Source of the DNA: Auanema rhodensis
Lineage: Eukaryota > Animalia > Nematoda
Assembly: GCA_964057225.1 (NCBI GenBank)
Contig: OZ059899.1
Span: forward strand, 11,532,001-11,596,000
Reading direction: 5' to 3'
Length of the DNA: 64,000 nucleotides
Shown: positions 10,813 to 14,166 of the stretch, one piece after another
Layout of the letters: each line of letters starts with the position of its first letter
Numbering within the stretch: position 1 is the stretch's first letter
Program-made: the position numbers and the translations under genes
Notes under the pieces: model-generated
The model's database searches: none
Told to the model about the DNA's origin: nothing
What the model saw: only the letters and a program-made list of their open reading frames with translations

Positions 10813-11158
10813 GAATCATCTACGTATATAATTGAAAATGAACAAGGTTGATCTTTTTGTTTTTAATCTTCTAGCAAGCAAGTTCATTACTTCGATTGAC
10901 ACGTTGTTTAGCCTAGATGAATTTGTAATAGCCATATAGTAACGTGAATTTTGTTATTATAGATTTGTTGTTGTTTTTATTAAATATTTTACATTCTCCA
11001 AATCAGCTCTATAACCTTTGAAGATTCCTCAAATAGGGGGGGGGGAAGGAAAAAAAATCAATATTTATTATACGTTTCTGGAGATGAACTAAATTACTCC
11101 GAGATAAGAATCATACCACCTCTTTCTTCTGCGAGATTCAAAAATAGCCGTACGACGG

Positions 11159-12479
11159 ATGACTATGCTTTTGAAGTTATATGACGACGTTGTATTAGTA
11201 TTCCTATATAATTTTGTTTTTATATATTTTATTATAAAAACATTTGTTTTTATTCCGGTAAGCTTATTATGTTTTAAAGATAGATTAATTTGGTTATCTT
11301 TAAATTTTTCTAGAACCTCGTAGCTATTCAAGAGGATCCTTATGTGTCAGGTGATTTCTTCAGATCTTTAGCAAGCATAGTTGTATATGATAACAAGCAA
11401 GCTCGGAAACTACAGACAGTAATTTATTTTTTAAATCCAATTAGGAGCTCCGATTTCACTATTTTCACATATCGTCTCTTTTCAGACTTATGAAATACAA
11501 AATGGCTCCATAATCTTCATTCAACCTTCATTGCTTTGGGCTATGGAAGCATTTCAAAAACGTAACAAGCATTCATATATACTTCTTACACATGACGATG
11601 ATCTTTCTGTGCCATCGTCTTACACTAATATTTTAAAGTATTAAGCAACTAAAAAACAATAATGTTAGAAGTCAAAATTCAGTGATAAATACCTAATAAG
11701 ATGGTTCGGTCAAAATATCGATATGTATCATCCAAAGTTAGAAGGGATTCCCATTGGAATAGCAAATCATCATTGGGTTCATGGAAATCAAAGGCGTTTG
11801 ATAAATATACAAAAACATAAAATGTAATATACTTGAAATAGTAAACTGAAAAGCGGTTATTTTATTCTTTAGGAATTTCACAGAACGTTTTCATGGATTG
11901 TTTGTAGGATACATGGCAGCCACAGACACCAAGAGAATGCCACTGAAAAACCATTTTTGTTCGGAATCGAATGACTGGACCTTTTGCGTGTACGTCGTTA
12001 AAGTTCAGCAGTATCAATTCGAAAGCTTTCCAGGGAAAGACGTACCTCTGTACAAGAATACCTGATCAAGATAGCTACTGTGCAATTTGTTTTGTCGCCT
12101 AGAGGGAATGGCTTAGATTGTCACAGAACGTATGTTGATCACATAAATTTTATTCTATCCTTTAAACTGTTTTGCAATAATTCTGATTTCAGTTGGGAAT
12201 CTATTGCAATGGGAGCAATTCCAGTTGTTGAGAGTAGTACCTTAGATCCAATGCTAGAAACAGAAAATGTGCTTATCATCAACTCCTTTTTGAATGTTAG
12301 CTTTTTTTCGTTTTTAGAAAATTGCGTATGATGACAACTGAAAAAATTTGCTTTAGATGACCAAAAAAACTCTGATGGATGCAGCAAAAGACTTTCAAGA
12401 TAAGCCACGGCCTAATCGAAAGCTGTATAGAAACTACTGGCGAAGAAGAATTAGAAGTTTTCAAATTGTAACTGGATAA
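11159..12479 (+). CDS. Exostosin/GT47-like glycosyltransferase with N-terminal signal anchor, about 8 exons
   Basis: Spliced product MTMLLKLYDDVVLVFLYNFVFIYFII..DPYVSGDFFRSLA..YILLTHDDDLSVP..RWFGQNIDMYHPKLEGIPIGIAN..FVLSPRGNGLDCHRTWESIAMGAIPVV..KLYRNYWRRRI. Confidence 0.85.
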
Positions 12480-12666: not shown

Positions 12667-14166
12667 ATGGACGTCCCCATTATTATTCACAATAGGATTA
12701 ACCATAGTAGAATACAAACACATGTCGAAATAAAAGAAGACGATACTGTAATTAACAAAGTTGAAACTCGTTTTATTAAAAAATTTAACATAGATTGGAA
12801 CTGTGGAACAGCGTTTATCCGATAAGATTAAAATACCTCATGATCAATTGAATATTTTGCTTTGTGGAAAAGTACTAGAGCAAAATACGTCAATTAAAGA
12901 CTTGTTGCTCGGCCCTACTACGCAAGTTTACTGAATCTGGATAATTAGCACATTTTAAAACGTTTAGTTGTCTTGTCGCACTTGCTATAGAACAGAAAAA
13001 GGATTCAACTTTGAAAAGTGAATCGTTGGTTCGTTCTACACCTGCTATAGGATCTTTCTATGTATGGTGCAAGACTTGTTCTGATATACAAAGAGGAAAA
13101 CTTCGTGTATTTTGTCTTTCCTGCAATTCTACAGCTGTAGTTGTTGAATCCGATCCTACTGGATGGGACGATGTTCTAAAGAGGTAAAATAAATTTTTAT
13201 AAGCCAATTTAAAACAATGCTTGTTTTAGTAAGCGTATTCGAGTATACTGTGAAGAATGTGACGAGCAAAGATATGCTTCTTTCAAATTTAAATGTGTTT
13301 CATGTAGTGAAGTTGACTTATATTATCGTAACAAATCTTATAAGTAGGTTTGCAGACTTGTGCTCCATTAAGCCAAATTCGTGGAAATTGGGACAAGTCT
13401 GAATGTTGCATATGCTTAGACGATAGTCAGCTTTTTGTCTTTGATTTCGGATGCAATCACTCGATTTGTCGATCCTGTTTCTTAGAGTATTCTACTTCTT
13501 GTCTTAAAGAATCTAAATTCTTATTTCAACATCCTTTTGGTTACACTTTATCCTGCCCTAGCCTTAATTGTAATCGTTAGTATCATATTCCTCAACAAAT
13601 TCGAAAAATGTGAACTTCAGAATGCCTGAGAGATGTTCATCATTTACGCATTATGGGGTCGGAAAAGTACAAACAATACCAGTGTATCGCTACAGAAAAA
13701 TTAATTGCTTTGGATGAGCAAGGTAGCTTAAATACATTTATGGCGAAATATAGAGTATATTTCTAGGATTTTTTTGTCCATATCCTAACTGTGGTTACTC
13801 GTTTATTTGGGAAAACAGTGAGGGGCGTATGATATCTTGCCCCGAATGTCTGAAACAATTTTGCAGGTTTGATGATGGCTAATATCATTACTGATTAAAA
13901 TATTTAAAGGATTTGTATAGAAATAGAATGTATTTGCTTTTCTGAAGATACAACCAAAGAAACAATAGCAGCTACCACCAAGTCGGTTCTTTCTTAATAA
14001 TAATGACTCTTGAATTTGTTCCAGGAAATGTCCCGGCTGCGACAGTAACACTGAGCGCAGTGGAGGATGTGCTCACATGCAATGTACATCTTGTAAGCTA
14101 CACTGGTGTTACAGATGTGTGAAACCTTGGACAGAAGAATGTCAATTTGATCACTGGTTTGATTGA
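12667..14166 (+). CDS. pdr-1: Parkin RBR E3 ubiquitin ligase
   Basis: Ubl domain, RING0 GSFYVWCKTCSDIQRGKLRVFC, RING1 CCICLDD..GCNHSICRSC, RING2 KCPGCDSNTERSGGCAHMQC..WCYRCVKPWTEECQFDHWFD*. Confidence 0.95.

Follow-up and report, generated by a model that had tools for sequence, protein, structure and literature searches.

How did a glycosyltransferase of microbial appearance come to lie, interrupted by introns, in the genome of a nematode, and what kind of enzyme is it? The question is raised by a gene at positions 11159-12479 of a 64,000-nucleotide stretch of DNA from Auanema rhodensis (GenBank assembly GCA_964057225.1, contig OZ059899.1, positions 11,532,001 to 11,596,000 of the forward strand), which we call the window and to which the coordinates below refer. 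A first-pass annotation, made from the letters alone, had taken the gene for a microbial-type exostosin of family GT47 with host-style introns, and had proposed an old horizontal transfer that later acquired a signal anchor. Our analysis keeps some of this and changes the rest. We think it probable, though well short of certain, that the locus is a functional single-copy gene for an inverting, type II membrane glycosyltransferase of CAZy family GT114, that it goes back to one ancient entry from a foreign source before Plectida and Rhabditida split, and that it has since gained its introns and been held under purifying selection.

Gene structure and family

Reading frames and splice signals, evaluated by script, yield a plus-strand gene of eight exons at 11159-12479, in which 936 exonic nucleotides (nt) make up 311 codons and a stop. 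The seven spliceosomal introns lie on the same strand at 11258-11313, 11419-11485, 11638-11682, 11824-11872, 11990-12033, 12130-12192 and 12296-12356. They measure 56, 67, 45, 49, 44, 63 and 61 nt, and all begin with GT and end with AG, with pyrimidine-rich acceptors. The earlier outline of a type II membrane protein of about 300 residues with some seven short introns agrees with this model, and the predicted anchor and every motif that had been cited could be located.

With exon 4 as query, HMMER listed 201 cluster representatives at E <= 0.001, of which the best was CAI4221238.1 (P0001) from Auanema sp. JU1783, a partial protein of 266 residues at a contig end that is 76% identical across exon 4. 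P0001 aligns to all eight exons in order, at 52-78% identity, and at no second site in the 181-Mb genome. Since it matches a single locus in order, P0001 is the orthologue of a single-copy gene, and we took it as a natural full-length proxy; the window gene itself was searched exon by exon. An alignment of P0001 with 13 relatives served as family profile (profile A1).

Exon 1 (11159-11257; 33 codons in phase 0, including the start codon) codes for little beyond a hydrophobic N-terminal segment, a predicted signal anchor at about residues 11-33 (11189-11257), and is 64% identical to exon 1 of Auanema sp. JU1783. Exons 2-8 align in order to positions 26-291 of the 293-position profile, with 5-68 bits per exon, an ordered mapping that is far beyond chance. 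Exon 2 (11314-11418; 35 codons; profile positions 26-51) carries the motif PYVSGDFFR, with VSGDFFR at 11344-11364, and opens the N-terminal, acceptor-side Rossmann-like domain, while exon 3 (11486-11637) carries LLTHDDD, with THDDD at 11588-11602. The highest conservation of all exons is found in exon 4 (11683-11823; 141 nt), which scores 68 bits against the profile and contains the block WFGQN...HPKLEGIPIGIAN at 11702-11767. Gly178 and Arg187, which are discussed below, lie in exon 5 (11873-11989), and the motif SPRGNGLDCHR (12095-12127) lies in exon 6 (12034-12129). Exon 7 (12193-12295) finishes a Thr codon that is split by intron 6 and continues into WES..GAIPVV. Exon 8 (12357-12479) adds 40 codons and the stop, and codes for a C-terminal helix with a conserved YW motif (profile positions 257-291).

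The best relative of known structure is A075L of chlorovirus PBCV-1. This beta-xylosyltransferase, previously filed in GT47, became the founder of GT114 in 2024; it is inverting and metal-independent, uses uridine diphosphate (UDP)-xylose as donor, and has Asp73 as catalytic base and Asn148, Arg158, Asn202, Gly203, Arg208 and Glu211 as donor ligands, with Arg158 and Arg208 binding phosphate, Glu211 ribose and Asn148 uracil (PMC11571054). Searched against the PDB, profile A1 finds A075L at E 1e-48 and 169 bits over 211 positions (80-290). Exons 4 and 6 on their own match the same protein, in order (residues 93-127 and 191-210). PDB searches with exon 3 or exon 7 alone gave no relative, a search for related loci with the 50 residues of exon 3 gave no viral relative, and single exons proved too short for Pfam, which yielded no informative match with any of the eight. 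The top PDB matches of exon 6 were designed beta-trefoils, which we rejected as having a short motif in common by chance.

Structure prediction agrees with the profile search. The AlphaFold2 model of P0001 (predicted local distance difference test score 79) has a helix at residues 7-30. Foldseek ranks A075L first (E 1e-11), and VIA-align superposes the model on A075L (8AVQ) with Z 15.1 and a root-mean-square deviation of 3.8 Å over 198 residues. The next match is EXT1/2 at Z 8.8, and generic GT-B enzymes also score far under A075L. Judged by this model, the gene encodes a GT114 member with a two-domain GT-B fold that is superposable on A075L. The two proteins have similar domain lengths and share the catalytic Asp, both phosphate-binding Arg residues, the Asn-Gly pair and the ribose-binding Glu (PDB 8ASA, 8AVQ, 8Q8I), but they are only about 24% identical. 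The viral enzyme is soluble, while the worm protein carries a membrane anchor at its N-terminus and is encoded by a gene with seven introns.

We traced the residue correspondence from the window exons to profile A1 and from there to A075L. The catalytic base Asp73 maps to the last Asp of THDDD, Asp107 (11600-11602), and Arg158 maps to Arg187 (11934-11936), in a column that is invariant in A1. Asn202-Gly203 and Arg208 map to Asn230-Gly231 and Arg236 of GNGLDCHR (within 12095-12127), and Glu211 maps to Glu239, the E of WE, across intron 6 (12197-12199). The catalytic residue and the phosphate- and ribose-binding residues are thus kept, with spacing identical to A075L. The uracil contact Asn148 falls on Gly178 (11907-11909); the position is Gly in the window and in Auanema sp. 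JU1783, Ala in Diploscapter, and Asn in Plectus and the bacterial relatives. Because all mapped residues except Asn148 are kept, the catalytic apparatus appears intact and the base pocket modified, a donor-pocket difference that is no bar to GT114 membership. The acceptor-binding residues of A075L are not kept in the worm protein, which suggests that the acceptor, and possibly the donor, differ from those of A075L.

What remains of the exostosin assignment? On P0001, the Pfam family Exostosin_GT47 (PF03016) reaches 19.8 bits, under its cut-off of 33.4 bits; members of the same clade from Rozella (36.3) and Pelomyxa (40.9) pass it. Six-frame genome scans with PF03016 and with RXYLT1_C (PF24785) gave no match at 11159-12479. 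The PF03016 scan found three loci, one of them above the cut-off and all of them elsewhere, and these presumably include the true exostosin genes of the genome. GT47 exostosins such as EXT1 and EXT2, or rib-1 and rib-2 of C. elegans, are distantly related inverting enzymes with a GT-B fold and a similar C-terminal P.G....R..E motif, but they differ in that the worm orthologue has no GT64 domain, in the much lower structural Z, and in the Pfam score under the cut-off. The worm protein is exostosin-like at the level of the superfamily only, and the automatic UniProt name of the Diploscapter and Plectus proteins, 'Exostosin GT47 domain-containing', should be read accordingly. The earlier view of a stand-alone protein of microbial or giant-virus type, unlike animal EXT and rib proteins, holds, and its best PDB relative is indeed viral; its family name has to be changed from GT47 to GT114.

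The Pfam results also bring up an ordinary animal gene. RXYLT1 (TMEM5), the animal ribitol xylosyltransferase, is a type II membrane beta-xylosyltransferase. The worm gene might be a divergent, vertically inherited orthologue of it: PF24785 passes its cut-off on P0001 (30.3 versus 27 bits) and on the Plectus, rotifer and Pelomyxa members, the worm protein would share the type II membrane topology and GT-B likeness of RXYLT1, and A075L is a beta-xylosyltransferase as well. However, this match spans just about 55 of the 187 model positions (56-109), around a short nucleotide-binding motif, and P0001 shows no RXYLT1 N-terminal domain in Pfam. The worm protein, at 311 residues, differs in length from RXYLT1, and its whole domain aligns with A075L instead (E 1e-48, Z 15.1), while its closest relatives over the full length are bacterial proteins with about 40% identity. 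We consider orthology to RXYLT1 very unlikely and have rejected it on account of the short RXYLT1_C match, the lack of the N-terminal domain and the match to A075L over the whole domain.

Residence in the nematode genome

The gene bears the marks of long residence under purifying selection, as judged from its L12 and parkin neighbours, the synteny with Auanema sp. JU1783, the common introns and a pN/pS of 0.21. The window has a G+C content of 33% and sits at 11.53-11.60 Mb of contig 7 in an assembly of 181 Mb in 112 contigs. Upstream, on the plus strand, lies a gene for mitochondrial ribosomal protein L7/L12 (10126-10812; Pfam Ribosomal_L12 on two exons), whose stop codon is 346 nt before the ATG of the glycosyltransferase. 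Downstream, again on the plus strand, lies a gene for a parkin-type RING-between-RING E3 ligase (12667-13600; zf-RING_12 and zf-RING_14, the RING0 and RING1 domains of parkin, on two exons). The L12 gene also precedes the orthologue in Auanema sp. JU1783, in the same orientation and with a gap of 229 nt (contig L085, 4990-5772 and 6001 onward). The exon map of that orthologue, taken from tblastn, places introns 1-6 at positions identical to those of the window gene, and the gene of Diploscapter pachys has six intron positions in common with it, including counterparts of exon 4 (141 nt) and exon 7 (103 nt) of the same lengths and phases. Over 254 codons, the window gene and its JU1783 orthologue are 70% identical, with proportions of nonsynonymous (pN) and synonymous (pS) differences of 0.195 and 0.93, the latter saturated.

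Two observations on the upstream region may be added. The spacing between the L12 gene and the glycosyltransferase gene on the same strand, 346 nt here and 229 nt in JU1783, is compatible with a nematode operon. At 11036-11058, in the intergenic sequence some 100 nt ahead of the glycosyltransferase ATG, nine consecutive G precede an A-rich tract.

The physical setting decides against an assembly contaminant or a recent direct transfer from a bacterium into A. rhodensis. Such an event could be suspected from the raw scores alone, as the best matches outside the nematodes are to bacterial-type sequences (166-167 bits), with the top rotifer sequence at 147. But the gene is integrated, with its seven introns, in a contig of more than 11 Mb between the L12 and parkin genes, other nematodes have orthologues with common introns and synteny, and the nematode sequences are monophyletic in the tree described below. 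The chance that contamination or recent transfer accounts for the gene is negligible in our view, and we have rejected both on the grounds of the introns, the native neighbours, the nematode orthologues and nematode monophyly.

A decaying or functionless relic, whose enzyme is no longer active, is also improbable, although somewhat less so. The replacement of the uracil-binding Asn by Gly or Ala in the rhabditid copies would fit such a state. It is opposed by the intact frame over eight exons with canonical splice sites throughout, by the pN/pS of 0.21, by the retention of the catalytic base, both Arg residues, the Asn-Gly pair and the Glu, and by the persistence of the gene since before Auanema and Diploscapter split.

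On two Logan contigs related to Plectus, the gene is uninterrupted. A Plectus-like contig (L087, 2635-3786, SRR12417985; 71% identical to P. sambesii), which may be genomic DNA or cDNA, holds a single open reading frame (ORF) of 383 codons, and a contig from a sister of Plectus (L169, 855-1931, SRR15204656) holds one of 358 codons. Should these contigs prove to be genomic DNA, the seven introns of the rhabditid genes would have arisen later than the divergence from Plectida.

Distribution, phylogeny and origin

Carriers of the gene were named through word-indexed searches (with P0001, the Diploscapter protein and an alignment of the clade) and cluster look-ups, some of them clustered at 50%. 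Among the matches listed, the nematodes are Auanema sp. JU1783, Diploscapter pachys and Plectus sambesii, and the only other animals named are bdelloid rotifers (Didymodactylos, Rotaria, Adineta). The other eukaryotes in the same matches are Rozella allomycis, Pelomyxa schiedti and a nucleariid-type EukProt entry, and the bacteria are Dependentiae/Babeliales, Chlamydiota and Margulisbacteria. No protein of Caenorhabditis or of a parasitic nematode was among them, but the word-indexed search is leaky: the Diploscapter query missed Auanema. A Diploscapter-like fragment was found on a soil-type metagenome scaffold. The relatives of A075L named on the founding of GT114 belong to viruses, bacteria and a few protists and fungi, and include no animals (PMC11571054). 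In the full-text literature, our search for GT114 returned that paper alone, and no work tying together nematodes, horizontal transfer and exostosin-like genes.

The family is broad in bacteria. When one genome per bacterial or archaeal species was scanned, 380 bacterial species genomes held a relative; the best 80 of these are mostly Parachlamydiales, Waddliaceae, Rhabdochlamydiaceae and Dependentiae/Babeliales, with 31-41% identity over nearly the whole protein, on contigs of up to 2.6 Mb and frequently in tandem copies. More distant relatives occur on 473 IMG/VR viral contigs. The proteins of environmental Chlamydiota and Dependentiae/Babeliales are the closest by score (31-42% identity). 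They have about 290-300 residues with a hydrophobic N-terminal segment and share the motifs YPYISGDTFR, THNSD, WFGQN...HPKL.PIPIG and SPRGNGLDCHRTWE. They differ in having THNSD where nematodes have THD.D, a form common to all nematode copies, while all others have THN.D. Their genes are without introns and often stand in tandem in same-strand clusters, in one case beside a GT32-type transferase. Six Dependentiae or Chlamydiota loci (L011, L020, L022, L026, L028, L055) have two GT114 copies within a few kb, some adjacent, in packed same-strand ORF clusters. In L011 a GT32-type (Gly_transf_sug/TcdA-like) transferase follows about 0.75 kb, or one ORF, downstream, and apart from this match Pfam was empty on the neighbours of the bacterial copies. 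As a hydrophobic segment is present at the N-terminus of the bacterial and the other eukaryotic relatives too, the worm needed no anchor acquisition, and this part of the earlier proposal is not supported.

By score, then, the nearest relatives of the worm protein are bacterial, P0001 matching bacterial-type sequences at 166-167 bits, rotifers at 147 and Rozella at 145. The trees, built with the JU1783 orthologue, tell a different story. In FastTree overviews of 403-469 domain sequences, the worm genes group with Rozella and unlabelled sequences. A mixture-model tree of 87 rows, made with IQ-TREE, unites every nematode, rotifer, Rozella and Pelomyxa sequence in one clade (27 rows, support 97/94), together with metagenome sequences whose contig neighbours are of eukaryote type (ELO, SNF, TFIIF-beta, EGF); no labelled bacterium lies in this clade. 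Ten of its members come from metagenomes only, and cluster look-ups returned no names for them. The Didymodactylos, Rotaria, Rozella allomycis and Pelomyxa schiedti members of this clade are stand-alone proteins of about 290-400 residues, but they are only 30-39% identical to the worm protein, and the related copies found on eukaryote-like metagenome contigs have unbroken reading frames. Two Didymodactylos carnosus proteins (P0110 and P0366, 3048-3088 residues) have the GT114 domain near the N-terminus of an EGF-like protein of great length. An error in the gene model may account for this fusion, since a stand-alone protein of 292 residues (P0367) falls in the same 90% cluster.

Nematode monophyly is not rejected in the 87-row tree (approximately unbiased (AU) test, p 0.49), and in a tree of 48 labelled sequences the nematodes, including Plectus, are monophyletic with support 97/93, Auanema with Diploscapter at 100/96 and the Plectus pair at 100/99. 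Nematodes, rotifers and Rozella together receive 96/97, the nematodes being sister to Rozella plus rotifers (97/92). In the unrooted tree, the eukaryote clade joins a polytomy of Chlamydiota and Dependentiae groups, within which Margulisbacteria and a group of Actinomycetes, Devosia and Burkholderiales also fall, and outside which lie Spirochaetes, Bacteroidetes, Saccharibacteria and one gammaproteobacterium. We also considered a giant virus as donor and rejected it: the 22 best viral sequences, added to the tree, all fell outside the eukaryote clade.

Two histories are to be weighed against each other. The gene may be ancient in eukaryotes, dating at least to the ancestor of Amorphea, and have passed vertically to nematodes and rotifers while being lost nearly everywhere else, with amoeba-associated bacteria and giant viruses taking it from their hosts. 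This would agree with the single supported clade of eukaryotic sequences (97/94, or 96/97 for nematodes, rotifers and Rozella) and with the AU test on animal monophyly given below. It would also be in keeping with the life of the main bacterial carriers, which are obligate symbionts inside protist cells, and with their proteins, which resemble the eukaryotic ones in the N-terminal anchor and in the length of about 290-300 residues. However, relatives occur in 380 bacterial species, including Actinomycetes, Margulisbacteria and Proteobacteria, with Spirochaetes, Bacteroidetes and Saccharibacteria branching outside the polytomy, and many bacterial loci contain tandem paralogues in operon-like clusters. 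The eukaryotic carriers are very few and scattered, so that dozens of independent losses would be needed, and the best tree joins rotifers to Rozella rather than to nematodes (97/92). We regard this history as unlikely, though by no means far-fetched.

Foreign origin is the more economical reading, because in bacteria and viruses the family is both broad and deep, whereas its eukaryotic carriers are few, scattered and microscopic, and because vertical descent from an early eukaryote calls for very many losses. The most likely history is therefore an ancient horizontal acquisition before Plectida and Rhabditida split. Its source would have been a gene pool common to amoeba-associated bacteria (Chlamydiota, Dependentiae) and a few microbial eukaryotes; after this single entry, the gene would have gained spliceosomal introns and been retained under purifying selection in some free-living nematode lineages. 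The old transfer proposed in the first-pass annotation is thus plausible, and ancient, but it was no simple event from bacterium to worm, since the nematode clade lies inside a eukaryote-only subclade.

Several points weigh against the reading of a functional gene of ancient foreign origin. A tree constrained to unite nematodes and rotifers is worse by 14.9 log-likelihood units, a difference at which the AU test does not reject it (p 0.21), so that the gene may descend from an older animal gene. Because the eukaryote clade and the bacterial groups meet in a polytomy of an unrooted tree, any donor and direction of transfer proposed here are conjectural. The absence of the gene from other nematodes and animals is only suggested, because it rests on the matches listed by leaky word-indexed or 50%-clustered searches. 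The full-length Pfam, structure and tree work was done on the JU1783 orthologue P0001 as stand-in for the protein of the gene at 11159-12479, whose transcription and splicing are predicted from conservation. Finally, Gly at the position of Asn148 could mean altered or weaker donor binding.

Predicted activity and significance

By homology, the enzyme would reside in a Golgi membrane, presumably held by its N-terminal signal anchor with the catalytic domain in the lumen. If the mechanism is that of A075L, Asp107 of THDDD would deprotonate the acceptor hydroxyl, Arg187 and Arg236 would hold the diphosphate of the UDP-sugar and Glu239 its ribose, and the sugar would be transferred in one SN2-like, metal-independent step with inversion. 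By analogy, the donor may be UDP-xylose, the sole donor known for GT114; this is uncertain because the uracil-contacting Asn is Gly. That the product is an unusual glycan, as had been proposed at the outset, is speculation.

A bolder reading can be put forward tentatively, as one that we entertain without expecting it to hold in full. Nematodes and bdelloid rotifers would provide the first animal GT114 enzymes, and the worm enzyme, its domestication dating back beyond a single nematode order, would add a sugar, possibly a beta-linked pentose, that is absent from canonical animal pathways. The exchange of Asn for Gly in rhabditids would mark a donor switch, and the subclade made up of eukaryotes alone would be the trace of genes moving between bacteria associated with protists and several microscopic eukaryotes, unrelated to one another but living in the same habitats.

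Both the enzyme family and the type of event, the domestication of an old foreign gene by nematodes, were known already; what is new is the animal member. The case also cautions against best-hit 'alien index' logic, which misleads here, as bacteria score highest while the tree sides with the eukaryotes. To the short list of old foreign genes in free-living nematodes it adds a dated case, placed before the split of Plectida and Rhabditida and marked by common introns. GT114 is extended to animals, with conserved, intron-bearing and selected copies in three nematode lineages and further copies in rotifers, and Auanema offers a genetically tractable host for studying the cellular role of a GT114 enzyme.

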